64,000 bases of DNA. It comes from Epiperipatus broadwayi (Eukaryota; Animalia; Onychophora). The first letter of the stretch is position 1. Each line of letters opens with the position of its first letter. Shown here piece after piece: positions 2,761-60,200 of the stretch. A program made the translations under genes and the position numbers. The stretch covers positions 6,386,001-6,450,000 of the forward strand of contig JAQFVV010000007.1 in NCBI GenBank assembly GCA_028023455.1, written 5' to 3'. Under the pieces are notes generated by a model that had not been told where the DNA came from, did not search any database, and saw nothing but the letters and a program-made list of their open reading frames with translations.

Positions 2761-3374
2761 AAATAATATATTCTATATGTGAACACATTTATGCCGATTG
2801 CATTACTTAGTCATTGCAAAACTCATTTCTAGATTAGTTCTTTTTTACTCGTTTGAAATTGGAATGGCTATATTCATTCATACTTATTTGTGGCTGTTGA
2901 TGATATCTCAATAATAATTCTTTTTATTCACTTGGAATTGGAATAGCCATACTCATTTGTGATTGGCTGCTACTGTTAATGATATGTACTAGCCACTAAG
3001 TTGAGAATGGATTAATATTAATGAATTCTAGAAAAAGAATAAAATGTCATGTTTTTAAAAATTATGGCTATATAAGTTTGATAAATAATGCAGAATTTTA
3101 AATTGTCTGTTGAAACTAGATAATAGTGGTTTTAAAGAATAGATATTAGGAAACAATAGTATTTTCTAAGCAACAAGCAGTTGAATTAAAAAAAATACTC
3201 ATCAAATGAGTTATACACTTTTACTTTTAGAATCTCCACCCTATTATTGCACTAAATCATACAGCATTTACATATAAAATGTTTTCTAAACAATATTCTG
3301 GTAAATATTATGATATTAAACTGTTATATAAAAAGTTAGCTGCTAAATAATCATTCAGAAGTAAATGACTCGAT

Positions 3375-3692
3375 AAACATCACATGATTACCATTTCTTG
3401 TGCTTGTTTATACCTGTTATTAAAACAGGCAAAACTCACTATATGTATTGCCACACTGCAAGCTAGAGTAATCAATGGATGCCAGAAGGCTTGTGCATAA
3501 AATACTAAGATCTAGGTGCAGTGCTCTCAGATTCAAAGCTCCTCACTGAGAAATCCACAAGCTAGAAACTAGTCTGGGGATATTAGATAAGTAGGTACTA
3601 GATGGGGATTTTATGCACAAGCCTTCTGGCATCCATTGATTACTCTAACTTGCAGTGTGGCAATATGTATAGTGAGTTTTTACCTGTTTTAA
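3375..3692. mobile_element. Family A palindromic HHR element, inner left arm deleted
   Basis: Inverted arms 3420-3503 / 3608-3692, the family spacer gatctaggtgcagtgctctcag, and a tail with tcacatga at 3380. Confidence 0.8.
3541..3579 (+). ncRNA. Family A hammerhead, degenerate core
   Basis: CCUCA CUGAG-A AAUCCACAAGCUA GAAAC UA GUC UGGGG (1-nt deletion in the core). Confidence 0.6.
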
Positions 3693-5102
3693 GTAAATGA
3701 CTCTTGAATTTTAGCTGATGAAAGTGTTTTTTAAAGTTAATGACAAGGATATAAATGATTTAGAAAATCTAATTCAATGATAGAGGGAGAGAAGATCTGT
3801 AAAAAAAATGCGTGCTTATTTTTTCCAAAATCTGTTGCTTATATCTTTCGAATGCATCCTAGAGCATGCTATACTCACCTGGACCACAAGTCTTTAGGCT
3901 TGTCATGCCTTATATATAATAATATAGAAAGAATTGTAATAAAGATATTTGTGCAATCCGTAAATTTATATTTATTTAATTTAACAAAGTTTTATTCTCT
4001 TAATGCATTTTCAAAGCACAGTATATTACAATAGCTGTGTGATTTTTAAATCTATGGTCTATATTTATGGATGTGAAATGTGGTCTATAGATTAAAATAC
4101 TTGTTTAACTATGAAATTTATATTCTTTTAATTTGGTTTCAATATAAAATGGTATTGCAGTACTTGACATTTTTAAATGTATAGACCATCTTTCAAATCC
4201 AAAAATAAGTGAATAAAATCATTATTATTATTAAATATTATGAATTTAATGAAAGACAAAGATCTCTTCAGATTTAATTCAATTTCTATGGTCCACAGCT
4301 GGTCTTCTCTACATTACTTTAGTCAATGTTTTTAAACTTGCCTATCAATCTCAAATCATTACTTTCTAGGACATATACTTTCTTTTAGGATGCAATTTAG
4401 AACATCAACAGCCCATATATTGTCATCTCTTCTGGTATCATGTTCAGTTCAATGGCATTTTAATTCTTTCAATAATGACAATTATTTGTTTGATTTTTTT
4501 TTTTCAATGTTGTATTTCATTTTTGAACCTCCTTATTACTTCCAACATAATATTTCTCCATACATAACAGTGTAATCTGAAGTTTTTGTGTTGCTTTTTT
4601 ATGAAGTGTCTAAATACTAGGAAACATATTTATTAAAAGTCTTCCTTTTCAAAGACATATTTCTGCCAAAAGCACTCTATTTGATATTAATTTTATGATT
4701 AATTTTTATCTATTGCATGCCATCTGTATTAATAATTTGATCAAGGTACTGTAATTGTATTTGTTAATTTCTTCCAATTCATTACTATCAATCTTTATAT
4801 TTTGTTTAGCAATTTTTAAACTCTTTCTTTCTTACTTTTATTTGATGACTTACATGACATTTCTTGGTTATTTGTGAAAACAAAAAATAGCTAAAATAAT
4901 CTCCATGTATTTTCCATTCTGAAAAATATTTACTCCAAAATTGTTATCAAAATTTTTGAAGAGATATGATCACTCTGTTTTACACTCTTATCAGTGATAA
5001 CCTTCTTGGGGTCCATGGAGTTTAACTGCTGTTGCATTATGATAAATAGTCTTCAGAATTTGATAATTATATGTCAGATCAATCCCATCACCTAGTTTTT
5101 AG

Positions 5103-12564: not shown

Positions 12565-12943
12565 GTAATGTTAATGGTAATAATAATTTGATTTATAAGG
12601 TAAAGATATTTAAAATTAATAAGTGAAGTTAATGTATATTAGAACATTAATAATATTACTGCAAAAGTATATGTATAATAGATTAGCATTAAACCAAAAT
12701 TCCTGTTTTCAGGATATTTTATTTTATTTGTGAATTGAAAATTTAAATCAACAATAATTTCATCTATAGATTGTACATATTGAAATAGATCACATGATCA
12801 CCATTTCTCATGCTTGCTCATAATCATTATTAAAACAGACAAAACTCTCCATACAGTAGTGCCACTCAGTGCAAGCCAGAGTAATCAATAGATGCCAAAA
12901 GGCTTGTGCATAAATCCCTATCTAGTGCATACTCATCCAATAT

Positions 12944-12983
12944 CCCCAGACTAGTTTCTAGCTTGTGGCTTTCATCAATGAGG
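12944..12983 (-). ncRNA. Family A hammerhead (C3U substitution)
   Basis: CCUCA UUGAUGA AAGC CACAA GCUA GAAAC UA GUC UGGGG. Confidence 0.7.
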
Positions 12984-13024
12984 AACCTTGAAGATCTAGG
13001 TGCAGTGCTCTCGGATCCCAAGCT

Positions 13025-13063
13025 CCTCACTGATGAAACCGCAAGCTAGAAATTAATCTGGAA
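13025..13063 (+). ncRNA. Family A hammerhead variant
   Basis: CCUCA CUGAUGA AACCGCAAGCUA GAAAU UA AUC UGGAA; stems I and II weakened. Confidence 0.65.
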
Positions 13064-14049
13064 ATATTGGATGAGTAGGCATTAGATAGGGATTTTATGC
13101 ACAAGCCTTCTGGCATCCACTGATTACTCTGGCTTGCACTGAATGGCACTACTGTATGGAGAAGTTTGCCTATTTTAATAACATATTGAAATAGTTTTGC
13201 ATATTGTATATATTTAGTTTATTAATAATACTATTATACTTTAACATACCTTAAATTAATATTAGCACAACATTTTTATGTAGCAGTAATTAAAACAAAA
13301 TTGATATTTTATTTTGAAAGTGAAAGCTGTTGAATTAGAAGGGTTCGAATTAATGGCAATCTACTTTTATAAATCATAAATTTTTAATCATAATTCTATT
13401 TTTTTCACTAAAAAGGAAAAAAAAAAGATGTCAATTAAAAAAAAAATATGGCACTCTACATACTTTGGCTATAAAATGTAATGATGAGAACTAATATCAT
13501 AACAATAAATGATAATAGTAGAAAATTCCAATAATATAATGTGAGACCCAAATTTTAAATATTAGTTTAATATTTTGATAATAGATGGCGGTAAATCCCA
13601 AGCTTTATTTTTCTAATTTACAAAATTTATAAAAAAATTTAAAAACTCTCTTTAAGAAAATTAATTACATCACATATATTTTTTTAATTATTTTTTTATA
13701 CTAGAAAGTGGATTATTTTAATGATTCAGAAAAAGAAATTAACAATAACTTTAAAGAATAATTTAAAATATAGAATAATAAATTAGAAAAAACTTATCCT
13801 TTTTTTTTTTTTTTTTGCAACAAACTATCAGCCCCCCCCCCCCGCCCTCTCCCATTTATCCCTAATATTTTTTTGCAGCATTATAGGTTTTTTATTACAA
13901 TTCTGTGACATCAAGCTAAAATATATATATAAAAATCTTATACTTATATATAGATGACGTTTTTCTTACAGATATTGCACAACTTTAATCTGTTTTCTTT
14001 CATTTCTAAACTCAAAATAAAAATATATTATTACAAAACTATACTATTC

Positions 14050-36824: not shown

Positions 36825-37462
36825 ATTAATTAAGCTAAATTTTTTATTCAAATACTTTTACATAGAAATTTTTGTTAATGATTGGACGTGCGTAATCATA
36901 ATAAAATATCTCTGACCTTTTAAAAAATGCTTGAATTTTTAATACAAGACATCTTTTGCATATATAAAAAATTGTTGGTTAACGATATTAGACTTCAGAA
37001 AAATAAAGAAAACTTTTTTTAGCTTTTTAAAATATTTGGATTTTTAATAAACTTAGCACTTTGCGGAGGGCGGTTCGCTAACGTCGGTCATTAATGAAAA
37101 CAAATTACTGTAATCAGTTTTAGAAATTTTTTTTTGCCTTTTTTAAACAAACATCTGTTTAATTTATTTAAGTATTATATAAATACTGATCAGCAGGTGT
37201 AAGCATCCATTTATATGTGAAAATAAAAAAACTTTAACTTTCAGAAGTTAAAAAACATATACATTTTCAGTGTAAAAAGACGCATTTCTTATATATATAT
37301 AAGTTGGCATCCGTGCAGTTTCTTCAAAAAGTGCTGAAGGATGGAAATAAAACACATTATAATATTAAACAGTGAGGATTGCCAATTCCTCTACAAGCTT
37401 TATAATAAATGCCTAGCCAGAGCCAGCACTTAAAATATCTCTGTCAGGAACTCATCCACAAA

Positions 37463-37503
37463 CCCCTGACCATGGTTTCGTGCTTTGGCACTCCTCAGAG
37501 AGG
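37463..37503 (-). ncRNA. Family B hammerhead ribozyme, fully canonical
   Basis: CCUCU CUGAGGA GUGC CAAA GCAC GAAAC CAUG GUC AGGGG; all three stems pair and the triplet is GUC. Confidence 0.9.
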
Positions 37504-37893
37504 TGTCAGGGTAGGTTCAGACACTAGATCTAAAAATACCAACCCAAAGCCAAGCATTTATCTAAAAAAAATTTATCTATTGAGTGGAAAATCTGAAATT
37601 TTCAGGCATCTACATGTCTTCAAACCCAGCTATCTAACTCAAATAGCTATATGGGGCTGATAGATCTTTAGCCATACCATATATTAGTAGTCATAGCAAT
37701 ATAAAATTGTATAAGACTTTTGGCAGAGACTATAGATCTATCAGCCCCATATAGCTATTTGAGTTGGATAGCTGGGTTTGAAGACATGTAGATGTCTGAA
37801 AATTTCAGATTTTTCACTCAATAGATAACTTTTAGATAAATGCTTGGCTTTGGGTTGGTATTTTTAGATCTAGTGTCTGAACCTACCCTGACA

Positions 37894-37934
37894 CCTCTCT
37901 GAGGAGTGCCAAAACACGAAACCATGGTCAGGGG
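37894..37934 (+). ncRNA. Family B hammerhead ribozyme (one stem II mismatch)
   Basis: CCUCU CUGAGGA GUGC CAAA ACAC GAAAC CAUG GUC AGGGG. Confidence 0.85.
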
Positions 37935-40900
37935 TTTGGGGAGGGGTTCCTAACAGAGATATTTTAAGTGCTGGCTCTGGATAGGCATTTATCATAAAGC
38001 TTGTAGAGGAATTGGCAATCCTCACTGTTTATAACTTACAAGCTTAAGAGATAGGATCATGTGATCTATGAATTGGATCTATGACTCTTATTTTGACATT
38101 ATAATACTGGTTGTTAAATTGTAGATAGCAAGTATATTGCATAAATACGGCAACTTTTAATAACATTTAGTAAAAACTGCAAGTCAGTAATGTAAAACAC
38201 TACTTATTATAAAATTCAATGGGCAAATGCATGCTTCATGTACTACTTTCTCCCGATGTGTTCTAAACAAGAACATTTTAAAAAGAGTTTATAAGATTTT
38301 GTGATAATAGTCATTGGAGATAACTATGAAAATATAATATATGCTATGATATTTCATTTGTAACCCATAATTGAGATACGCTAGTGACTTGAAATGGCTG
38401 TCGTAAATAGATAAATATGTAATATATGCATTGATTTAGAGATGGCACTGCAGTAGCTTAAAGTCAGAATAAATCACCTTGTTACTGGGACACCCAAATG
38501 TACATCAGGTTGTCATTCTTTGATCAAGAAAAAAAATTTACATGGGTCAATATAATTTGTAAAAGACTTACTATGAAAATGTAAAGTGTTTATATTCAGC
38601 TTTATTTAATATTTATATTTTGGAAACATTGGAATAATAAGTGCTTTAATTTTCTTTTCATATATCTTTCAAAAATATAGTTTTAAGTACATCTAAGAAA
38701 AAAATACATATGGTAAAAAAGAAGTGAATTTTAATTATATCATGTGATTATGTTTAATTAAAAGCAGATATATAAATCTTAACTGAGGATTAAATGTTAC
38801 ATTAATAATATCTAGCCTAGTAAATAATTGGTAATAATCTTTAATGTATTTATCTAAAGTGGGTGATGTCAAAGTTGTGAATGCAGAAAGTTTGACACTT
38901 GTAAATCAAACTGTAACAATTTGCCCATTGATAGATACTAATTAAATGATGAAGATGTATAAAAAGATTGTTGCCTGAGTCACCTGAAGAGTACTGGCTC
39001 AATAGTATGAATTGTATCTTGGAGTCATTTATCTTTTTTCCAGAAGTCTTTGTTTATATATTTCAAGAATTTGTGGCATGGAAAATTTAAACATAAGTAT
39101 GCATACTTATGGGCTTTGATGTTCAAATGTCACATGATTTTCCATGTAGCTATATATATATATAACTTTTTATGTTTGTCTAAACAGTTTAACTAATGGT
39201 AACACTAAGAGACTTCTTTCAATCTGAGGTAAAACAAAAAGTATCGCTTTGGACAGTTGCATGGCTCTCAACCAGCCACATTGATTTGAGCGACAGGTGA
39301 TCTTCTGATACCAAATATGTTATTTTATATATTTTTACAAATAAAAAAATAATGATAAACTGCTATCTTTTTTTTAATACAAATATTTATATACGTAAGA
39401 TTTTATTTTATTTAAATGTTTAAAAAGATATATGTCAAAACAATCTGTTAATTTCTGTAAAATGAGAAAATAAAAAAAAGTTTCAAACATTTTTCATTTC
39501 ATTTACTTTCCCATCAGCTGAAAACAGTCTTCTTTGAACCCACATCCAGGTAAAACAGATGTGACAAAAAGAATTATACAAAGGCTTCAAAAAACATCTG
39601 TCAGCCAGTTAAGAGCTCTTCCAGTAGAACAAATTGTTTGAATATTATAAACTATTTTCAAGAACTAATTAATAAATAAATAAAAAACATCAAAATCTTG
39701 TAACAGAAGACAAGTTTTAAAATATAGCTGGGTGGGTTTTACTAGAGTTACTGTACTATTTAACAAAAAATAATAATTATTGGTTTGTTGTTCAAAATAC
39801 AATCACAATTTAGAAAATTTAATTTCAAATTAGAGCGTGTATATGGATATATATTTACACATACATACATACACGGTGTATTCCGATGAAAAGATGACCG
39901 GTCCTACCTCTGAGCATCCTACTACATTTATAAATCAATGCATGGATCACGTAGCAACATAGTATAGCTATTGATAACAAAAACTTTAAGGCATTAGATT
40001 TATATCACGAAATAAAGCATGAAATGTGACACTGTGTTTCCTATCTTCAAGGATTGTATTCAATACTTTTCCTATTATCACAAAATGTTTCAAACCACTT
40101 GAAAATGTTTTTTAACTCATAGTTTCAATGTCATGTATAAATTGAATAATTTCAAATATTTCAGCAGCAATTTTACTCAATTTAAAGCAGACTATTAGTA
40201 CATTGTTCCATCATGGATGAAGATAGTAAACATATTATCACATTTCATGCATAAATCTTAACATCAACATATTAGCACCTTACAATAAATATCTAAACCT
40301 GTGTTGCTTCAGAAATGTCACTGCAGGTAGTTTAAACAGAGAAGCCACAGTCACCATTTTTACTGGAATATGCTGCAGTATTTTGTGATTATTTTAAATT
40401 TTAAAATATTTGTTTTTATTTTTACTGTGAGGTGTAGAATTCCATCACACTCCACAGCTTCAAAATATACACCATAAATGAAACAACTAATTGGCAATAA
40501 ATAAATAGAGAATTTGTTTTAGCGAAACACCATTTGTACAAAGAATTATTTTCTACTTCACTGTTACTGCACCTGTTTCATTTTTATATTTGCAACAATT
40601 GTACGAAAATCAGTTCTAACTCACATATTAACTAAATTTCAGCTATGACTGATTGTTACTTAATTAAATTGCTGTCATATATATATATATATTTCAGAAA
40701 TATACACACATTATTTTTATGCATATAGTCAAAGACTAAAAGCTATAAAAATAAATATTAATACGCAAACTACATGACACAAAACATAATACATCAATTA
40801 TTGGCCAGGTTGTTTAACTACAAAGTGGGCAATATTTGATGGTCCATGCTTCAATTTTTTCACCTCTAAATTTTCATGGTTATACAGTTTGACACTTCTA

Positions 40901-45900: not shown

Positions 45901-46479
45901 GTTGTTCCCCAAAATTTATTCATTATACAGCTTCTACATGATAGAATGAGAGGAAGTGTTATGACTACAGGTGAAATATCTGAGGTGATTGAAATGAAAA
46001 AAACAAGGATGTGTACTTTCTCTATCATTGATTTTAATTTTTATGACGATAGTCTTTGGAATTATTTATAGATGGTTTAATCAAACAGAGATCAAGATAG
46101 AATACAAATCAATTAAGAGTAAAAACAATAACTTTTTCCTGGATTTTAGATTTACAAAATGCTGATGATTATTCTATTTTTTCTAGTTCAAAAGAAGATA
46201 TCTGGAATATTCTTAAAGTTTTAATTGCAACATATAAAGACATCATTTTATTGATTAATGTTCAAACAACTCAAGTTTTTTATCACAAGTGATAGAAGAA
46301 AAATCATTAGCAACTTTTAACTTGGATGATTCACCACATAATCACTATTTTTTATGTTTACAGAAGCTGTTTATCACAAAGGCAAAACTCTCCATATAGT
46401 AATGCCACTCAGTGCAAACCAGAATAATCAATGGATGCAGGAAGAGAAACTTCCTATCTAGTTCCTACTCAGCCAATAT

Positions 46480-46519
46480 CCCCAGACTAGTTTCTAGCTT
46501 GTGGCTTTCATCAGTGAGG
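46480..46519 (-). ncRNA. Family A hammerhead, intact core
   Basis: CCUCA CUGAUGA AAGC CACAA GCUA GAAAC UA GUC UGGGG. Confidence 0.85.
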
Positions 46520-46550
46520 ATCTAGGTGTAGTGCTCTCAGATCTAAGGCT

Positions 46551-46590
46551 CCTCACTGATGAAAGCCACAAGCTAGAAACTAGTCTGTGG
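46551..46590 (+). ncRNA. Family A hammerhead, intact core
   Basis: CCUCA CUGAUGA AAGC CACAA GCUA GAAAC UA GUC UGUGG. Confidence 0.85.
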
Positions 46591-46869
46591 ATATTGGATA
46601 AGTAGGCACTAGATAGGAATTTTATGCACAAATCTTCCTGCATCCATTGATTACTTTGTCTTGCACCTTATTGTATGAAGTGTTTTGCCTCTATGAAAAA
46701 CTTGGATGATTATTGGTGTGAAAATGTAAACCAATTTTAAATATCTTGGTAGTTTTTATAAGTAGAAAGGTGGGCTTAGATGTTGAGATCCATCACAGAC
46801 TACAATATGCTGCTTTTAACAAGTTAAAAGATAGAGTATTTCATCACAAGAAAATAACTACTGTAATTA

Positions 46870-47702: not shown

Positions 47703-49309
47703 TAAAGTATAATGATATCGGGTCCACTATTGTAAAAGCATACCTTCATTGGATTAGACATGTAAAATGAATGAACAACGCAAAGCTTCCTAAAGTGTAT
47801 TTTATGCTGAACTTAAGAATAATTTCGAGGAAGAGGAAGACACCATTGAGAAGACATGATAAATAATTGGAAATTTACAATTAGCAATGGTGTTGAAGTA
47901 CAGCATTTCAGAAAATTTTCTGCTGAAAAAATTAAAAGACCTTATCATCGTAAAATATCAATAAACAGAAAAATGGACCAGCATGTTCTTGCGAACTCAT
48001 GTCTAGATAAGTTTTATTTCTTCTTCCTTTTTCTTTCTTTTTAGAGTTAGAATGGCTATACTCGTTTATGAATTAAGTCTAAAATTGTCATTGTAAAATA
48101 AAATGTTAAAAGTTTGAAAAACAATGATAATGATGAAACTGGAGATCATAAAAAATTGAGTGCTCCTTTATAGTCTTATAGGTATTAGAAGCTACTGAAG
48201 GAAAAGAAAATTAAGTTTTCCATCTACATACGAATATTTTCAGCTATGACCAAATATATTCTTTTGTAATCATTAATTTATTTTAAACTTATTTATAACC
48301 TTGTGATTTGTATCATTATTTTCTAGATACGTCTAATATAATGATTGGTAAACTTTTTTATGACAGTAATTTTAATCTTTGATAAAAATCACATTTTTCA
48401 TTATCACTCTAACCAATATTGTAAACCTTTTTACTCTTCATCTATTTATTCTGAAATAATCCTACAAACATTTATAACATTTTTATAACCTTTAAAATGT
48501 CATTTGTAAAATCCATTAATTTTCAAATAAAAGAGAAAAAGATTTATTTTAAATTCAATTTCGATTAGCTTATTAAATAAACAAACACACACACACACAC
48601 CTTTCTCTTAACCCTTTTATTTCGGATTATTAGTTTTTAAAAGTTTACTAAAGACATCCCTTAAACCTTTCAAATATAAATTAACATTATAAGAACAAAT
48701 TTACAATTTTTGTTAATTTTGGGGGGTAAAATCTAAACGTATATATTATAGGCAGCCCATATTTATACAAACCAGACATAAGCAATTCCAGTCAAATCTA
48801 AGCATATTACACTACAACAGTCCCGTACTTCTATAAACCAAACTTAAGAATTCCCGAGAAAATTTCTAAGTAATATATAGTGTAGGCAGCCCTGTACTTA
48901 TAATAACCAAATTTTAAAAAAAAATCTATATTTATTTATTAATCTTTTCCTGACATATATAATGTTTAAAAATGAATATAAATATTCAGATCTCAGTTAT
49001 TATAGGTTTAATGCTCTAGGAACTCATCTTGGTAACGTTCGTAAAAATTCACTTTAAACAAGAAGTTGTAGAATTAATAAAATATTGCATGACTTTATTT
49101 TATTTATTACTCTTCCAGTGGCAGGTTATTTTTTACACTGCTATGCCACCTATTAGTTATTAAAGCCTACAGTAGGTAGCATAAAAGGTGAAGAAAAAAC
49201 TGCCACAGAATTGTAGAATATTTAACTTTTATAAGGAAAAAACAGCATGTATTATACATGCAATTTATCTGTACATCTAATTTATCATCTAATTATTTAA
49301 ATCATCAGA

Positions 49310-49770
49310 AAAAATACATATATTAAAATATAGTGATGTAAAGTCTGCCCATCCCTCATATGTGCATGTAAATGGATTATGTCCTGTACATGAGGGGTCA
49401 GAGTGACTTATGATCAACATGGGTAGGATGAGAAAGTTGGCACCAATGTGGGGTTTGAGCATTCCATCATCAAATTTTCAATGAAATGGATGGCTGTAAG
49501 AGTTGTGGGGTGGAGTGGATTGAAGCATGTCCATTAAAGTATGAAGATTGGCTATCTTAATATAAGATGAGCATTGATTGTATATATGTGTGGAGATGAT
49601 AATCTGGACCAACTGATGAGTGCTGGCTTCTTTATCTTTTTGACATGTGTGTGATCAAGTGCATCTGCAGTATAAAATAGCATGGGTAGTTGAGGGTCAT
49701 GTGAAAGTCTGAGTTCAAACCCTATATATTACATATTAGGGTGCAGGTATGAAAAAGCCTGTACTGTAGA
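49310..49770 (+). mobile_element. Family D monomer with 3' half of the HHR deleted
   Basis: Colinear with 36350-36830; ggaccaaCTGATGAgtgctgg is followed by a deletion. Confidence 0.75.
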
Positions 49771-50261
49771 AAAAATTTATATATTAAATCCTTTTAATAT
49801 TTTTCTAATTCTTAATGGATATCTACTAACATCACTTTTTAAAATTATGGAGTAAACTTTTTTTTTAATCATTTGATCGATTATATATATTCTATCACGC
49901 TAAAAAATCTTAGAATTTAATATCTATTTCATATGGGAGCCAGTAATGACAAATGTTGCTGCTCTAGTATTTCTGGGTCAATAATTGCTTTATTTCCAGA
50001 ACAATAAAATTTTGTTATCATTATTTAAGCAGGCATCCTAGATATAGAAATTCTGCAACAGCAACATTAAAAAAATCAAATGGTTTAATGCTCAGGAATT
50101 TATAAGTTTAAACATAGTAAGTAACATATTCTAAAGAATGTTTATCAAAATAGCACTCATTACATTTTATAGTAATAGAAAGATAATTTAACTTTGAGAA
50201 AAGTGTATGATAGAGTTGTGATAATATATGCACTATTTCCAATCAATAAATGTTAAATGAC

Positions 50262-50498
50262 TAAACATCACATGATCACCATCTCTTATGCTAGCACATT
50301 AAACAGGCAAAACTACAGTAGTGCCACCCTGTGCCAACCAGAGTAATCAATGGATGCCACAAGCCAGAAACTAGTCTGGGGATATTGGATGAGTAGGCAG
50401 TAGATAAGGATTTTATGCACAAGCCTTCTGGCATCCATTGATTACTCTGGTTGGCACTTGGGTGACACTACTGTATGGAGAGTTTTGCCTGTTTAATA
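50262..50498. mobile_element. Family A element with internal deletion
   Basis: Arms ~50298-50358 / 50428-50496; only caagccagaaactagtctgggg of the HHR remains. Confidence 0.8.
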
Positions 50499-50591
50499 AA
50501 TGTTTAGAAAATTTTAAACTTTATTTAAACTTTTCAAATACAAACAACCTGTTAGTAATAATACATAAAGAGATAACCCAGGTTAGTAATT

Positions 50592-50636
50592 ACACAACAT
50601 TTTGAGTAGTAGTATTCTCATCTCTTCTTCAAGTGT
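50592..50636 (-). ncRNA. PLE-tail hammerhead, decayed
   Basis: ACAC UUGAAGA AGAG..CUC AAAAU GUU GUGU. Confidence 0.5.
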
Positions 50637-50651
50637 TGCTGGCATGATCAG

Positions 50652-50743
50652 TGACAATATTCGCATAGAAATCAAACTCACACTTTTAGATTCTCAAATA
50701 TCGGATTTAAGGTAAACGCTCTAGCCAACTGAACTATTCTGTC
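50652..50743 (-). other. tRNA-like Pol III module in the PLE tail
   Basis: gacagaatagttcagttggctagagcg..ccttaaat..gagtttgatttc..tattgtca: A box, B box and pairing acceptor ends. Confidence 0.55.
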
Positions 50744-51265
50744 AAAGACAACAGATAATAGAAATTTTATATATTTTTATATGAGGGTTGGTTCAAATCC
50801 TCCTGAGTCCTTCAATTTTTTTTTCTAAGAGCAAGGTTAATTAGAGTTTTTTTTTTAAAAAAATTTCTAATAGTAAAGTTAATAAGAGGCTTCCATATAT
50901 TGTGTATTACCACACTGGGTTGATCTATTAAATTATTTGTCATTGTCATATGAGCAGCTTTTTCAATTTTCTTTTTGCATCTTTTCCTTTTTATCCAATA
51001 TTTTTGTATTTTCCCAATTAAACATGCATTCATTATCACATACATTGTCTGCTACTATAGACACATCTGTTTTTTCTCTTTTAATCATTAGTTTGGGTTC
51101 TTTCAATTGCTGTGCAATGGGGCAACAGGTCTCACCAATATATTTCCTTTTATATTCACATGGTATTTCATAGATGCAGTTTTTGTTCTTCAGCATTTCC
51201 AGTTTAGGCTTCGTAAAAGAATTCCTCAAAGTGGGGTATGGCTTTGGAAAGTTGTTCTGTTATAT

Positions 51266-54256
51266 TGAAACAGTAAGATTTGCTTTGCAGATCTTTGTTT
51301 CATCTTTTCTCACCGCTTTCCTACCTCATACCTTAGTTTAAACCCCAGAGTATCGTAGTGGGTCTGCAATGCGCTTATCTGCTGAAAATCCCACCCAATT
51401 TTAAACCACGAGTACAATGATCATGTTATATATATTTGTGTTTCTAATTCCCAGTATAAATAAATATTGTAAATTATATGTATGTACACATAAAAGATAT
51501 TTTTTTCAAAAGTAGGTTATATAGGTTGTAATTGCACACACACTGTGATATATTTATTTTCAAAACCTTAGGTAAAATAATACTTTGTTGTTTAACATTA
51601 TTTCTGTTTAAATCTATTTATAAAAAGATATTACATTCGTAATATTTGTTTTAGTTTAAAATAAAATTATATTCGTCCCATAAGTAGATTTAAACATTGA
51701 AAATTAAAAGTAAAATAATTTTTTTTTAGATCTTAAAATCACTCCACATATTTTCTGTTTAAAATAAATGAGGGTTGGTCAGAAACAATAGTTTAATTAA
51801 TATGTTCTAGGATCTTATCTAGAAATACAGCAGATGTCCACTTAAGGTAGTTTTTTTTAATTAGCAAAAGTTTTTTTTTATTAAATCAAAGTTTTAATCC
51901 GAATGTCTACAGGATAATTAACAATAGAAATTAATTAAAATTTTGTTGAATTCCTTTGGACATTCGGATGGGTTTAATTAGAGTATTGATAAGATAGCAA
52001 ATTTTGGTATATTTGAAACCCTCCAGGGCAGTTTTATTGTACAGTTCTGCTATATATAGAAGGGTTTTCTTTTGTTTTGTCATTCTGATTTTTCTGGGCA
52101 TTCTGATTTTATTCTGATTATAACTCATTCTGATTTTATTCTGATTATAATTTTTTCCGAGCTTTCTGATTTATTCTGATTATTTTATTATTATTAGTTT
52201 GCTAGTAGCCTGAAAGTTTTAATGTTTGAAGCCAAGTTTTCATCTTCAAATAGACTTTACAGTTTTCTAAAATATTGCATTTAAAGTTCTCTGAAACATT
52301 CAACCTTTAATGGAAATCCCAGGATGATGAAGTAGAGCCAGCAAGAAGGCTATTTTTCTTTCGGAAATGGCCATCCACTGCACATCAATGCCATCTGATG
52401 GCTTCACGTAAAAAGCCCTAAAAACTGCCACTGCTGCTAAAATGTGAACTGTAACTGGAATTTGTTGCCAAAGTCTTATGAGTGCTGCTACCATCGAGGT
52501 GGAAAGTCTCCACCTGAAATTTGCCTTCAAATGCCTACTGCTGACGAGGTAACCCAAATTAACCCAAGAGCTCTTATGATCGTATATTTCTCTTCTCAAG
52601 CTATAGCTAATTCTATATGTTTTTTGTATCTTATAATTATGTACTCATTTATTTAAATTCTATTACTTAATTAGTGTATTCTGTCTCTATACTTGGGTTA
52701 ATATTTTGTATTTTAATCTGTTTTTCTTTTATTATGATGGTGTGCCAGCATAGCCCTCGATCGAGTGAATTATTCCCTTTTATTTAAATCAAGATGCTAC
52801 CATTAAGGCGTTTTAAATTATAAATTTGTCCCATTTTATTATCTCGTTGAATTGCTCATTAAAGGGCTATCTTACTATTATTCCATTATTTCATGATTTT
52901 TGTAGTTAAAATCCACATGTTTATTGGTTTTAACATAATATGAGAATATGCGCAGTCAATGAGTAAATATTTAAAAATGCATGATTGCATAATAAACATA
53001 TTTTCTTTTAAAACCCCACAATCATGCATTATCCCACTTTAAATATGTTTCATTGTTATGCTTAAATTTCCAAGCTTATAATTTTGAGATCAAGAATGTG
53101 TGGACTTTCTTTCTTAAAATAACTATTTGGGGAGTTGATTATGTGCTTTATCAAGCTAAATGAATCCTGTTTAAAATATTTTATATACTTATTTGAGTGT
53201 TGCTAGTAGGAGTATTGGGTGTCTGAGATCGCTTTGCTCCTCCAAAGGGCTTTAAATGGCTAAGACCATTTCCCCTTCACTTTCTGTGGTTCCCAGTCAG
53301 AGTGTGTATTTGAAATTGTCATACCTGGGAATTCTACACAGTTGTCACACAATCACTAAGATTTGGATGAGTCCAGACTTGGGCTGCCATGTGACATCAC
53401 CTCCTATGGATTTAGGGCAAAATGCCTTCTGTATTTTATTTCACTTATTTATTATATAATTCTTTATTTTGCAAAGTTCCTGTGGTTTAAATGTATCACA
53501 CCCTCCATCCTTTACAGAAATTCCTCACTAGCACCACCAACCTCCCAATGTAATTTAGTTATTTCTATGAATATAAATGCCTTAATCATGTCCCCACCTA
53601 ATAGCTTAATGAGCATCAGTCCATTCTATTCTCAAATTCAAGAAATGTTATATTAAACTTTAGTGTCGTCAAACCCTTTTATTCAATTATTTCTGATATT
53701 TACTTAAAACACCTCACATATCTTCATAAACTTTCTTAGGCACATTATTGTAAGGTTATTGTATTAGCCTGAGATATAGAGAATACATTAACAACCTATA
53801 AATCTAAATGTTCATTAATATTGTTTTAAAACACAATCTTAGTAAACATCACTGTCTAACATATGCAGACAGTGTGCGAATTATATATATTTTGAGAGCG
53901 TAATAAATCTTTTAAATTTACTAAATTTTTATTTTTTATTTTCTTGATCTATATCACTATCTCAGTCTATATCTGTTATATATCTCTTTTGTGCCATCCA
54001 TAGACATTTAGTTAGCAAACCCAAGTTTATAGTGTAGTATAGAGTCTCTTAATTTCTCCCTGATCACCGGCACTGGTTAAAAGGTTATATTATTAGTAGC
54101 ATCAGATGTGTTGTCACGTAGATGGCACTGTGGAATTTAGACTTTAGATTCAAACCTAGGATATCTAGAAGGCAACCCCTCCTAGAGTGTTCAGTTTTGT
54201 GTTTGGGGTTTAAATTCTGCAGTGTGTTAGCGAGATATACGAATCTGACCATTACA
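51266..54256. mobile_element. TG...CA-bounded insertion with 4-bp ATAT TSD (LTR-retrotransposon-like, decayed)
   Basis: atat|tgaaac ... ttaca|atat. Removing it restores the PLE sequence seen uninterrupted at 57560-57600. Paired LTRs are not evident. Confidence 0.55.
52080..52190. repeat. Minisatellite (ttctgattttattctgatta-like units)
   Basis: Direct reading of the sequence. Confidence 0.8.
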
Positions 54257-57200
54257 ATATTTACTGCAGATTTTCTTTAATTAGTCTGTCATTCCTGGAA
54301 TGTATGGATGTGCTACAGTACTAATAATTGTTTTTTTGGTTTTCTTTTTATTGTCTAATAAAGGTTTCCTCCATGATGACTGATGGATAACCATTCTTCA
54401 TGAGAGTTTGTTCTATGTGAATCTTTTCATTTTCCAAATCACTGGTTTCTGAAAAAACTTCCTTTGCTGTATTCCATAGTGATAGTATAATTCCATGTTT
54501 AGTGTTTCTGGTAAGATTGGATATGTATGCCAAGTAGTTGCCAGTGTGTGTTGGTTTCCTATAACTTGTTGTTTTTATTTTGCCCTGAGAAAGACTTCTT
54601 ACAAGAAAATCTAAGATTGCCAATTATTGTTCTCATTATGATTCCATTGTAAATTTAATTGAGGGAGAAGTTGTTGATATGCATCCAGAATGACTGTAAT
54701 TGTGCTTTACCATGCATTCATACCACAAATGTATCATCAACATAGCAAAGCCACAGTTTAGGCAAACATGGGGTAGTATTTATCACTGTGGTTTCAAGTA
54801 CTTCCATGTAAATGTTGTTCAGCAAGGATAGTGGTGATCCATGGCCATCCTTTGATTTTGTTGGAAAAATTCTGAGTTATATTGAAAGTATATTGTTGTT
54901 ATGAATAACATTAATAATTCCATTATACTATCAATAGGTAGAGTTTTCTCATTTGTAGATTATTATCATCATATAATCTTTCTGTTACAATAGACAATGC
55001 CTCATCACACAGTAAATAGATTTGACAGATCAAAGTTTACCAATTTGTCAATTCTTTTCATTTTCATGTCCCTGACTAAATCTACAAAGTGCTTAGAATC
55101 ACTGACAAGGGATTGTGTTGTATATGCCAATGGACTAAGAACTACAAGAAAAAATCTGACAAAATTTTAACATGGTGAGTTTTTGGAACTAACAATAGGC
55201 CTTAATGGAATAATTAAACATTGTCCTTATGGATTTTGTAGTTCATACATATGAGGAATCTTGCTGAAATATAAATGTAATTTCTTTTTTTCTGACTCAC
55301 CGAAATATCTGTGATATTTCTGGAGTAATGCTTGTAATTTTATCTCATATTTAGAATTGGATTTTTTGCTATTTTTTTTGTATTGGCCTTCTGTGAGAAG
55401 TTTTTTGTATTTTATTATCATAATCAATTTGATCCATTATAACTGTAGTGTTACCTTTGACAGGAGGAAGAATGATTATAGATGTGTTCTGTTTGAGATT
55501 TAATGAATTTCCTCTCATCACATGGAATATTTGATTTCCATTTCTGCATTTGATATCAACTATCCAGTGTAACTCTGCTGCTTCTACCAGAAGCAATGTT
55601 TGGATAACTTCCTCAGTGGCTGCCATTATATTCAATAGCACAGTAAATGGAGTAATGGTGAACTTCAAACCTTTTCCAAAATCGGATAATTCAGCATCAG
55701 TAACATGTTTAGAACTAAGACTTTCCACTGATGAAGCTAGTAGATTGCTAGTTGTAGTATGACTTTTGACTTGGCCATGTAGATTTAAAAGCTTTTTCTT
55801 CTGATGTTCATTTATCCTTCCATGTTATTTACAATAAGATCTTTTCGCTGCTTGATAAATTCTTAATACTTCATCTGTATATGTAAGTCTATTTTTAGAA
55901 AACATTTCACATTTCTAATAAAACAGAAAGTCTGAAGCTTGAAAAACCATTGAACATTTATTCTTTCTCTCAATAGAGGCGCATTTATTCTCTGAATAAT
56001 TTTCTCCACTCTCTTGGAGAAAATAGGAGGTTTTATTTGCAAACCCTTAGGACTAATATCTTCTGAATTACATTTACATAAAGTCAGAAGAAGTTTGTAA
56101 ATCTACTTAGCAAGTCAAAAGTCATACTGCAATTAGTCTACCAGCTTCATCCGAAAAAAATATTTGTTCTAAATACTTTATTGATGCTGAATTATCTATT
56201 CTTGGAAAAGCTTTGAATTTCATCATCTACTGTCTATTATTGGATATAATGGCAGCCACTGAGGAAGTTATCAAAAAATTGCCTCTGGAAAAAAGCAGCA
56301 GAGTTACACTGGAAAGTTAAAATGACACTTGAGAGACATCAAGTACAGAAGCGGAAACCAAACATTCCATGTGATGAGAGGAAATTCTCTCAAAGAGAAT
56401 ACATCTATAATCATTCTTCCTGCTGACAAAGGTAACAATATAGTTATAATGGATAAAACTGTTTAGGAAAACAAAATACAAGAACTTCTTACAGCAGGCA
56501 AATACAAAAAGCAGCAAAAAATCCATTTCGAAATATAGAGATAAAGTTACAAGCATTACTCTGGAAGCACTGCATGTATTTCACTAATTTAAAAAAAGAG
56601 GAAATTAATTTTATATTTCAGCAAGATTCCTCACCTATACGAACTACCTATACTCCATAAAGACTTATTTCCATTATTCCATTAAGATCTTTTGTTAGTT
56701 CTAGAATTCACCATGCCAAAAATGTGTCAAGATTTCTTCTCATAGTTCTTAGTCCATTGGAATACAGAACACAGTCCTTAATCAGAGATTTTAAGCACTT
56801 TGCAGAATTAGTCAGGGACATGAAAATGGAAAGAATTGACATATGCCTATTGTAAAGAAAAGGTTATATGATGATAATAGTCTACAAACTGTAACAATTC
56901 TACTTACTGATAGTATAATGGAATTGTTTATGTTCTGCATGCCAACAACACACTTTCAATATAACTCAGAATTCTCCAACAAAAGTAAGGGAGGCCATGG
57001 ATCACCATTGTCCTTGTTGAGCAAGATTTACGTGAAAAAACTTGAAACCATAGCCATAAATACTATTCCATGTCTTCCTAAAGTGTGGCTTCACTATGTT
57101 GATGATACATTTGTGGTATGGCCTATGGTGATGTGAAGTTACAGTTATTCTGGATGCATAATTAACAACTTATCTCCTTCAGTTAAATTCACAATGGCAT

Positions 57201-58050
57201 TTTGAATGAAAACAAAAATTAGCATTTTTAGGTGTTCTTGTGATAAGATTCCCTCATGACAAAGTAAAAACAACATGGTATAAGAAACCAACACAAACTG
57301 TAAAGTATGGCTTATACACCCAATCATACCAGAAACACTAAACATGGAATTAAACAATCACTATGGAACAGATCAAACGAAGTTTGTTTGGGAAATGAAA
57401 ATATTCACATAGATCAAACTCTCATGAAGAATGGTTTTCCATCAGCCATCATTCAGGAAACCTTTAATAGATAACAAAAAGAGAGACCAAAAGAGAAAAA
57501 ACAGTGATTGGTACTGTAATGTACCCAAACATACCAGGAATGGTTGACAAATTAAAGAAAATCTGCAGTCAATATAACATTAGAACAGCTTTTCAAAGCC
57601 ATACAGTACTTCAAGGAATTCTTATTTCTATCAAATGATGAAAAAACAAGAACTGTATCTATTAATATCATGTAAATGTGAAATAAAATATATTGGTGAT
57701 GCCTGTCACTCTGTTGAACAGTGGTTGAAAGAACCTGAACTAATGGTTAAAAGAGAAATAACAGATGTGTGTACAGTAGCAGACCATGCTTCTAATATCC
57801 ATATGTTTAATTGGGAAAATATAAAAATATTGGATAGTGAGGAAAAGGTGTAAAGAAGAAAATTCAAGGAAGCTGCTCATATGACAATGGCAAATAAACA
57901 TATAAATCAACCAATTAATCTTGCTATTAAAAAAATAATTTTAAAAAGCCTCTAATTAACCTTGCTCTTGCAAAAAAATTGAAGAACTCAGGAGGATTTG
58001 AACCAACCCTCATATATACATGTATGAAATGTCTACTATCTGTTGCCTTT

Positions 58051-58142
58051 GACAGAATAGCTCAGTTGCTTAGAGGGTTTATCTTAAATTTGATATTCGA
58101 AAATCTAAAAGTGTGAGTTTGACTCCTATGTGAATACTGTCA
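58051..58142 (+). other. tRNA-like Pol III module in the PLE tail
   Basis: A box tagctcagttgc at 58058-58069, B box gagtttgactcc at 58115-58126, and GACAG/CTGTC ends. Confidence 0.55.
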
Positions 58143-58157
58143 CTGGTCAAGCCAGCA

Positions 58158-58202
58158 ACACCTGAAGAAGAGTAAAGAATAATACTACTCAAATCATTGT
58201 GT
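58158..58202 (+). ncRNA. PLE-tail hammerhead, decayed
   Basis: ACAC CUGAAGA A GAGUA..UACUC AAAU CAUU GUGU; stems I and II pair. Confidence 0.55.
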
Positions 58203-58300
58203 AATTAATACCCTCTGTTGTCTGTTTGTGTGTTATTACTGACAAATTGTAGTAAAGTTTAAAATTTTCTATACATTCAACATTTACTGATAGATGATAT

Positions 58301-60200
58301 TGTAACGAGCACAGACGTTCGTTACATTGTTGTTTTTTTATTTATTAAACATGAAAGTAAATTAAAAAGTTCGCATTTAAAAATTTTCTTTAAGAATTAA
58401 AAATTGAAATTAAATATCATCTTAAACTCGTATATATTAAATCGCACAGATAATGAAAAATTATTAAAATAAAACTTTATTAAAGAAAAAGTATTTTAAA
58501 ACTAAATTTTAAAAAGATTTGGAGATAAAATTATATCTTTAAATTTATCTTTAAATATATCTTTGATTTGGAAAACAGGTTAATTAATCAGAAATGGAAA
58601 TGATAAATTTAATTAGTCAAATGTAAACCAGCCTTGGGCATTTAAATGTAAAAACATCGGTCAGATAGGAAAACAATAGAAACTTTTAGCAAATGAAATA
58701 AATCCATTGGGAAATCGGACCTCAACGAAAAGGATCATCACATCGATGACATAATGTTAAGTCAATCTTTCAAAGTAATATAAAAGGACAAGTTTGGAAA
58801 TTATTAGGGAGTGATTATGATTATTATGATGTGAGAGATATGTGTTAGTGTGGAAGTGAAGGAGAAGGGATTGAAAAAGACGCATGATTCAATCCCTTCA
58901 GTTTTGCTAGGTAAGAAAGATAAATGAACTATCGTTTTTCTACATTGAGGACCAGTTAAAGCAAAAACCTCCAGATGGATAAATAAATCGGCCTTCAGAA
59001 TATTAACCTCTTTAGGATGGCATGGGAATTTACGTTCATGGCAAGCAACGGATAAAGTTGGACGTTTTAAAAATCGTAAGAACTTTATATTCACTTGAAA
59101 CAATAAGAACTCTAAATTTTAAAACTTTTTAGTAAATAATGCAATAGAATCCTATCTGACCAAACTAAATTCTTCATTAATAATGTTATTTGATGTATTT
59201 GTTATTTATTTATTTAAAATCATTTCCATTTATTTAACTTTGTTCTTTAAGTTTATTTATGATTTCTGTTTTCCGATAAATTAAAATATATCAATGTTAA
59301 ACTTAAGTCGGGCGTGAATGGCTGTATAGATTTGTAAAGTTATATTAGGGGAGGGTAATCTTAGGTTATTTGTGTTGTTGTTAAATTGGGTCAATGGATT
59401 GGATATATTGATGTAGTTAGTAGATGTAGTCGGAGATTCGCTACTGGCAGAATCGTTTATATATACGCCGCACTCACCCGTTTGCCTATGGAAGGAATTA
59501 TAAGACGGAGAACGCAGTTCCTTTCTATGGAGTTTTTTTTATTGTTCTTCTCATTAGATAGATGTAATATTCCTATCTGATGAGAGTCAATGTCTTTTCT
59601 TAATCTTTTTGGTGCTGCCGTATTCCGTATTACATTGAATACATCGATGTATCAGATGGATTGATGCCAGTTTGACTGCGAATTTTAGCCTAAGGTTAAA
59701 TAGGGATATAATATTTTATTTTCAAATGCAAATCTACGTAGTCTATTCATACTTGACCCTAAATAAAAATGCATTAAATTTAAGTTGTTTATAGACGCTT
59801 GCATGGATTGGTTAACGGTGAATTGTGTTTCGGGTTTTCATATTTGATCAAAATATATAGACATTCGATAAATAATGATACCTTACGGGGAGTATCTAAA
59901 ATGTATTTATTCGGATGTCTTTTAAGTTATTGGTGACAATGCAAGTATCTTATGCTGAATACTAGAGGGTTTCTTATATTTCCCTATGCAATTATCAGTA
60001 ATCAATAATTTTGTATTTTGATCGTTTATGTTTATTTTGAAATGTTTTTGACCGTTGAAATCTATGTAACCGATCTATAGCAACATATTAAAACAAGCTT
60101 TTATAATCCCATCTGTGCGAACTTAATTAAAATGTAAACTTATAATATAATAGAAATTAAAATGTAAATTAACACCTAAGGTAAAGTTAAAAATAATGTT
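58301..60200. mobile_element. Unclassified TG-initiated repeat (LTR-like); second copy starts at 63732
   Basis: The first ~250 bp align with 63732-64000; both begin ATAT|TGTAA with a terminal hairpin. The right boundary is uncertain. Confidence 0.45.

Follow-up and report, generated by a model that had tools for sequence, protein, structure and literature searches.

In a 64,000-nucleotide (nt) stretch of the genome of Epiperipatus broadwayi (Onychophora; assembly GCA_028023455.1, contig JAQFVV010000007.1, positions 6,386,001 to 6,450,000 of the forward strand), hereafter called the window, two decayed copies of a Penelope-like element (PLE) lie head-to-head. Our analysis revealed that this pair is very probably an old example of a composite made in a single integration. 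For the locus as a whole we consider it likely that one ancient insertion of a canonical PLE produced a long copy together with an inverted, more 5'-truncated copy, with a two-priming mechanism favoured. The head-to-head pair itself is the published standard architecture of PLEs in decayed form and is already known: an inverted 5'-truncated copy at the 5' end, together with a one-sided tail of 30-40 bp, has been described as typical (PMC8557442), and head-to-head was reported as the most frequent arrangement, with target-site duplications (TSDs) flanking the whole unit (Arkhipova et al., 2013, PMC3846280).

Anatomy and class of the inverted pair

Self-comparison of the window revealed a large inverted repeat (54257-55799 against 57575-56086, 76.8% identity, E = 0) and a second inverted match (50499-51268 against 58277-57569, 75.3% identity, E = 4.5e-155). 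The left arm lies on the minus strand and the right arm on the plus strand, the 5' ends facing one another. On both arms homology to a reverse transcriptase (RT) is followed by homology to a GIY-YIG endonuclease, as seen in tblastn searches with the open reading frames (ORFs) of L023, a young genomic copy of the family; ORF fragments on the same strands contain the YVDD box of the RT and a GIY-YIG-like CIYEIPC...YIGET motif. A preliminary description of the locus had recognized two homologous copies running in opposite directions, and these matches confirm it.

Pfam searches with the ORF pieces of the window gave no match; these fragments are too short for Pfam, and therefore young genomic copies were used for the assignment of class. 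RVT_1 matches the 692-aa ORF of L023 (E = 2.7e-13) and an ORF of the young copy L002 (E = 2.3e-13), and GIY-YIG matches the next ORF of L023 (L023:1070-1441:-) with 23.4 bits against a cut-off of 22.6 (E = 7.6e-5). Both window arms align to the RT ORF of L023 (E = 3e-159 and 2e-77, tblastn), and the neighbours of the RT in the ESM Atlas are animal clusters of the DUF8422/HTH_animal/RVT_1 type (score 0.97). Canonical endonuclease-positive (EN+) PLEs have this order of domains, an RT and then a C-terminal GIY-YIG nuclease (PMC8557442), and the element is assigned to them on this domain homology.

The source genome (5.6 Gb, about 30% GC) is rich in PLEs, and the family considered here has a unit of about 2.8 kb and thousands of copies. 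Unit positions are given along one natural copy of 2,793 nt, L004:1128-3920. The left arm is 5'-truncated at unit position 97 and the right arm at 374, the left copy exceeding the right by 277 nt on the 5' side. The preliminary description had correctly seen a longer left and a truncated right copy, but the left copy is truncated as well, and neither is the full element that it had assumed: both arms are dead, with at least 19 (left) and at least 12 (right) stop codons, several frame changes and longest ORFs of only 119 and 97 aa. In tblastn, the 5' part of the left copy covers aa 78-692 of the L023 RT ORF with at least 18 stops in three frames, and its 3' part covers aa 3-122 of the GIY-YIG ORF, the CIYEIPC...YIGET motif lying in the ORF 50963-51229. 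For the right copy the matches extend over RT aa 177-692 and GIY-YIG aa 10-122 and contain at least 12 stops, the YVDD box lying in the ORF 56843-57136. The window copy has no pseudo-long terminal repeat (pLTR), since its long arm begins only at unit position 97.

The boundaries given in the preliminary description had to be moved. The centre that it placed at about 55810-56075 is the extra 5' sequence of the left copy, the junction being at 56081/56089 with a filler of 7 nt; the left copy, thought to start at 50497, has a tail that runs to about 50198; and in the tail alignment weak homology on the right continues to about 58330. The span of about 7.8 kb does contain a real pair, but about 3.2 kb of it is foreign, the contribution of two insertions that later entered the left copy (Table 1).

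Table 1. Features of the head-to-head pair and its later insertions in the window
Feature	Position	Strand	Basis and remarks
Left PLE copy, distal remainder of the 3' tail, to unit position ~2767	50198..50253	-	Alignment to reference tail 2716-2793; exact end uncertain
Small hammerhead-palindrome unit, 241 bp	50254..50494		Sequence reading; 10-bp TSD AACATTTATT (minus-strand reading; 50495-50504 / 50245-50254)
Left PLE copy, 3' part: GIY-YIG region and proximal 3' tail, unit ~1936-2711	50495..51265	-	83% identity to the reference copy
Repeat of 2,991 bp with TG...CA ends	51266..54256		Between RT and GIY-YIG of the left copy; TSD ATAT (51262-51265 / 54257-54260)
Left PLE copy, 5' part: N-terminal region and RT, unit 97-1942	54257..56081	-	blastn to L004:1128-3920, 80.6% identity
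Head-to-head junction filler AGTCAGA, 7 nt	56082..56088		Between left end 56081 and right start 56089
Right PLE copy: RT, GIY-YIG and 3' tail, unit 374-2732	56089..58298	+	77.1% identity to the reference copy

Head-to-head composites across the family

An inverted 5'-truncated partner at the 5' end was found in 22 of 28 distinct loci (the window pair and 21 of 27 others), a frequency to be read as rough, since the loci were picked by similarity to the right arm and 40 of 15,136 candidates were scored. In total 23 distinct head-to-head junctions were recognized, while no tail-to-tail partner from the PLE family occurred among the 28 loci, and all 13 adjacent inverted hit pairs found in the genome search were in minus-then-plus order. 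TSDs of 9-18 nt enclosing the whole composite were identified at 11 loci (L029, L002, L007, L005, L037, L038, L039, L042, L045, L046, and L048); 12 loci had been extended for this search, and at seven of them (L037, L038, L039, L042, L045, L046, and L048) the repeats lie exactly at the outer boundaries, as they also do at L029, L002, L007, and L005. A perfect TSD of 14 nt survives even at L048, an old pair whose arms have diverged by 14%. We conclude that each head-to-head composite in this family is the product of a single integration.

The inverted arm varies in length from 123 nt to about 2.4 kb across the family, and the arms are always asymmetric, with truncation points such as 97/374, 567/1191, 309/496, 539/703, and 437/1004. 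At the junctions the arms overlap by 0-11 nt or are separated by a short filler. The outer ends of almost all complete composites are unequal, one lying at unit position 2791-2793 and the other at 2750-2774, which agrees with the one-sided tail of 30-40 bp described in PMC8557442. A pLTR, in the form of a direct tail fragment of 164-420 nt running into unit position 1, was present at 11 loci (L004, L005, L008, L014, L016, L017, L023, L026, L028, L029, and L030).

Two TSD-flanked composites combine different sequences of the family. In L037 (1976-6905) the arms, enclosed by one TSD, are 3.65% apart over 1,780 nt, and the long arm is at most 1.1% from another copy; at 21 diagnostic sites one arm carries the state of subclade X at 13 of 17 and the other that of subclade Y at 15 of 20. 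With differing subclade states inside one TSD, the arms of L037 are therefore not copies of one another. In L045 (494-7513) tandem X and Y units are mixed on one arm. Together, L037 and L045 suggest that multimeric or multiple RNA templates were used in one integration.

The sole tail-to-tail neighbour encountered in the survey, at L024, is an unrelated small hairpin 158 nt away. This element (L024:3730-4250) is itself a tail-only head-to-head hairpin of unit 2483-2786 and 2498-2750, 68% identical to the family, and is evidence that short palindromes of two tails are left by related PLE lineages, too.

Age of the arms and origin of the pair

The two window arms are of equal age: their distances to a fixed panel of young copies are 0.153 and 0.149, and across 19 pairs the ages of the arms correlate with r = 0.95 (permutation p <= 1e-4). 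In the maximum likelihood (ML) tree the window arms are sister taxa with terminal branches of 0.144 and 0.138 and a short shared branch, corresponding to a decay of about 0.14 substitutions per site per arm since the pair formed. Over the whole tree, arms of the same locus form 7 of 12 cherries (permutation mean 0.24, maximum 4 in 10,000). From the anatomy of the pair and these ages, set beside the composites of the family, we infer that this particular pair, too, very probably arose in one event.

Several observations weigh against the reading given above. First, by raw substitution distance the two arms differ by 0.182 and each lies 0.14-0.165 from young copies, the partner arm ranking only 26th and 28th of 34. 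The preliminary description had held that arms no more similar to each other than to other copies would imply independent insertions, and formally this is the outcome; however, the ranking was rejected as a test of one event, being flawed for coeval old copies, since two such arms differ by 2t whereas an arm differs from a young copy by slightly more than t, and across pairs the partner distance does grow with age as the 2t expectation predicts. Second, support for the window arms as sisters is weak (SH-like 0.72). Third, they share 37 derived sites, within the 28-39 shared with other old copies (39 with L009 and 33 with L013), although this count, which takes the per-column majority state as its yardstick, is uninformative on pairing. 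Fourth, exact or near-exact words of 9-16 nt in the 160-nt flanks gave no TSD around the window pair, none standing above shuffles, and realignment of the tails to fix the ends still gave none; decay of about 14% per arm, combined with the uncertain ends, could hide it. Finally, the survey loci were chosen by similarity as stated above, and the two-priming step draws on end structures and on one clear chimeric composite.

An independent second insertion that hit the 5' end of an older copy, whether by chance or through target preference, would agree with the raw distances, with the missing TSD and with the great abundance of the family (15,136 first-look candidates). Nevertheless, we regard this as quite improbable, given arms of equal age, a junction of 7 nt with no leftover 5' piece of either copy nearby, and an arrangement that is a near-rule in the family, always head-to-head and enclosed as a whole by TSDs. 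An inverted duplication at the DNA level after insertion, by a replication or repair accident, or an artefact of assembly is hardly credible here. Inverted duplications do arise through fork stalling, and palindromic artefacts are found in long-read assemblies, but the arms are 18-24% diverged with different secondary insertions, and therefore are no assembly artefact. Moreover, each arm ends at the 3' terminus of the element itself, no host flank DNA is duplicated, and the family shows head-to-head pairs only.

Within a single event, the inverted arm could have been made by fold-back, the nascent complementary DNA (cDNA) snapping back via microhomology and priming itself, so that the short arm copies the long one. 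Such self-priming was raised in PMC3846280, where palindromes at inverted junctions were read in this way; it would account for the 1-11 nt of microhomology at many junctions, for arms that are coeval and often sister taxa, and for the asymmetric arm, readable as a hairpin loop. We nevertheless consider it unlikely: it would not produce the two subclades inside the one TSD of L037, where the long arm is closer to another copy than to its partner, nor outer ends that stop at different unit positions; the TSDs are direct and not inverted copies of the flank, and some of the implied loops would exceed 2 kb (L004 and L026). The shared fold-back or template-switch step put forward in the preliminary description thus survives as far as one integration event is concerned, but fold-back as its means is disfavoured by the asymmetric arms, the unequal ends, and L037.

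The asymmetric arms, the unequal outer ends, the direct TSDs, and the L037 chimera together therefore favour two primings over the snap-back of one cDNA. In the proposed mechanism, the GIY-YIG endonuclease would cut both target strands with a stagger of about 10-14 nt, and each free 3'-OH would prime reverse transcription in the 3' tail of the element. The two cDNAs would then grow towards each other, stopping in the window pair at unit 97 and 374, and would be joined end to end with a few nt of filler or microhomology. A long decay followed, and the left arm later received a 3-kb LTR-like repeat and the 241-bp hammerhead-palindrome unit. Two primings agree with in vitro work in which a protein of the Poseidon clade cut both strands of the target and extended them (PMC11167929). 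Only tentatively would we go further and propose that a second priming event, independent of the first and located on the other strand, gave rise to the inverted copy, perhaps with another unit of a multimeric RNA as its template, the window pair being an old example.

The twin priming of L1, attributed to Ostertag and Kazazian in 2001, reportedly involves two primings on the two target strands and convergent cDNAs joined by microhomology, leaving an inverted 5' segment within one TSD. The mechanism favoured here would share with it the two primings, the convergent cDNAs, the microhomology join, and the single TSD. In L1, however, the inverted and direct segments are adjacent and non-overlapping, whereas both window arms begin in the 3' tail and overlap over more than 2 kb (unit 374-2732), the element being duplicated and not merely inverted; the non-overlapping pattern of the L1 type was not found here.

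Closer parallels are offered by the canonical EN+ PLEs (Penelope/Poseidon, Neptune, and Nematis; Craig et al., 2021, PMC8557442; Arkhipova et al., 2013, PMC3846280), with which the family shares the RT followed by GIY-YIG, frequent 5' truncation, partial tandem pLTRs, the inverted 5'-truncated copy abutting the 5' end, a tail longer by about 30 nt at just one of the outer ends, and whole-unit TSDs. It differs from them in that no canonical hammerhead, typical of those clades though not universal, was found in its tail or pLTR, and in the lack of a pLTR on the window copy. The window pair brings nothing new to the biology of PLEs, but the many TSD-flanked composites of the family, both young and old, could be used to test models of the inverted copy; if the reading is true, they would form a natural record of an integration step of PLEs that was called undefined in PMC8557442. 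For genome annotation, the 7.8-kb "palindrome" becomes one old PLE composite with two nested insertions, and the family can be masked by its true architecture.

Later insertions, hammerhead motifs, and the 3' tail

The larger of the two insertions, the repeat of 2,991 bp, is missing from 29 other PLE copies. Elsewhere in the genome it is represented by more than 20 full-length copies at 83-91% identity (9,360 first-look candidates); in the five copies whose ends and TSDs were compared, the TSDs are of 4 bp, often ATAT and often within (AT)n. Two full copies of this type lie in the same orientation 5.7 kb apart on C29 (1661128-1664053 and 1669746-1672723). By this arrangement the repeat is probably the unusually long terminal repeat (LTR) of an LTR retrotransposon of about 11.7 kb, and the window copy therefore probably a solo LTR. 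The alternative that the 3-kb block was deleted from the right arm, or is an intron, was rejected, as 29 other copies are without it and the block forms a separate repeat unit bounded by a TSD of its own.

The smaller insertion belongs to the small hammerhead palindromes of the window, the 241-bp unit being homologous to 46332-46711, 12780-13200, and 3350-3710. Its excision (50254-50494) brings back the homology of the PLE tail. Both hammerhead boxes of the unit are destroyed, including a 3-nt deletion in CTGATGA, and a CTGANGA...GAAA motif search gave no match within it. As a whole unit with its TSD lies inside the PLE tail, the small hammerhead-palindrome family was therefore still mobile after the PLE pair had formed. 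The palindrome at 50298-50497 was also considered as the hammerhead tail of the PLE itself and rejected, as it has its own 10-bp TSD and the PLE tail resumes beyond it.

The preliminary description had placed hammerhead ribozyme tails at the outer ends of the pair. At E <= 10, Rfam detected no hammerhead in the window between 49000 and 59500, nor in the young copies L004, L023, and L029 with their pLTRs included. In the same E-value mode the positive control was matched, Hammerhead_1 being called at 37462-37504 (34.3 bits, cut-off 34) and 37893-37935 (29.9 bits); this control is partial, as the hammerhead-like family at 46.4 kb of the window was not called. Gathering mode on the whole window returned nothing, a blank that is not evidence of absence, because E-value mode scored one of these hammerheads above the cut-off; the fast filters thus lose such short ribozymes. 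One CTGAAGA...GAAA string in the PLE tail was considered as a hammerhead and rejected: a helix II in register is lacking, and the flanking sequences pair with one another, a topology foreign to hammerheads. The only hammerhead-related sequence at the pair (49000-59500) is the secondary 241-bp palindrome insertion, and hammerhead tails pointing outward were not recovered. Although the GIY-YIG of the family is C-terminal, as in the canonical clades, the pLTRs of L004, L023, and L029 gave no canonical hammerhead.

A link between animal retrozymes and PLEs has been drawn in bioRxiv 10.64898/2026.07.22.740005. The small hammerhead palindromes or retrozymes of the window (46332-46711 and 37366-38031) resemble the PLE pair in being head-to-head, with one longer arm, and inserted with a TSD. 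They differ in carrying hammerhead motifs, whereas no self-cleaving hammerhead motif was found in either PLE arm; the 241-bp unit derives from such a family but its core is destroyed, and this copy by the left PLE arm is a later insertion foreign to the element. Comparison of the PLE family tail with the small palindromes revealed no common sequence; the preliminary description had suggested a test for such sharing. Its view of the pair as a giant version of the small palindromes holds in part: there is a continuum of inverted arms from 123 nt to about 2.4 kb within the PLE family, with the window pair at its upper end, but no sequence link to the small palindromes.

Finally, the 3' tail of the PLE contains a tRNA-like stretch, seen at 58055-58150 and 50650-50745 of the window and at L023:3654-3722, with a D-arm of the GCTCAGTTGG type and a possible acceptor stem GACAG/CTGTC. 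In this stretch the Rfam tRNA model scored only 18.7 bits (E = 9.3) and ARAGORN found no tRNA. The stretch could be a tRNA-derived module where reverse transcription starts.

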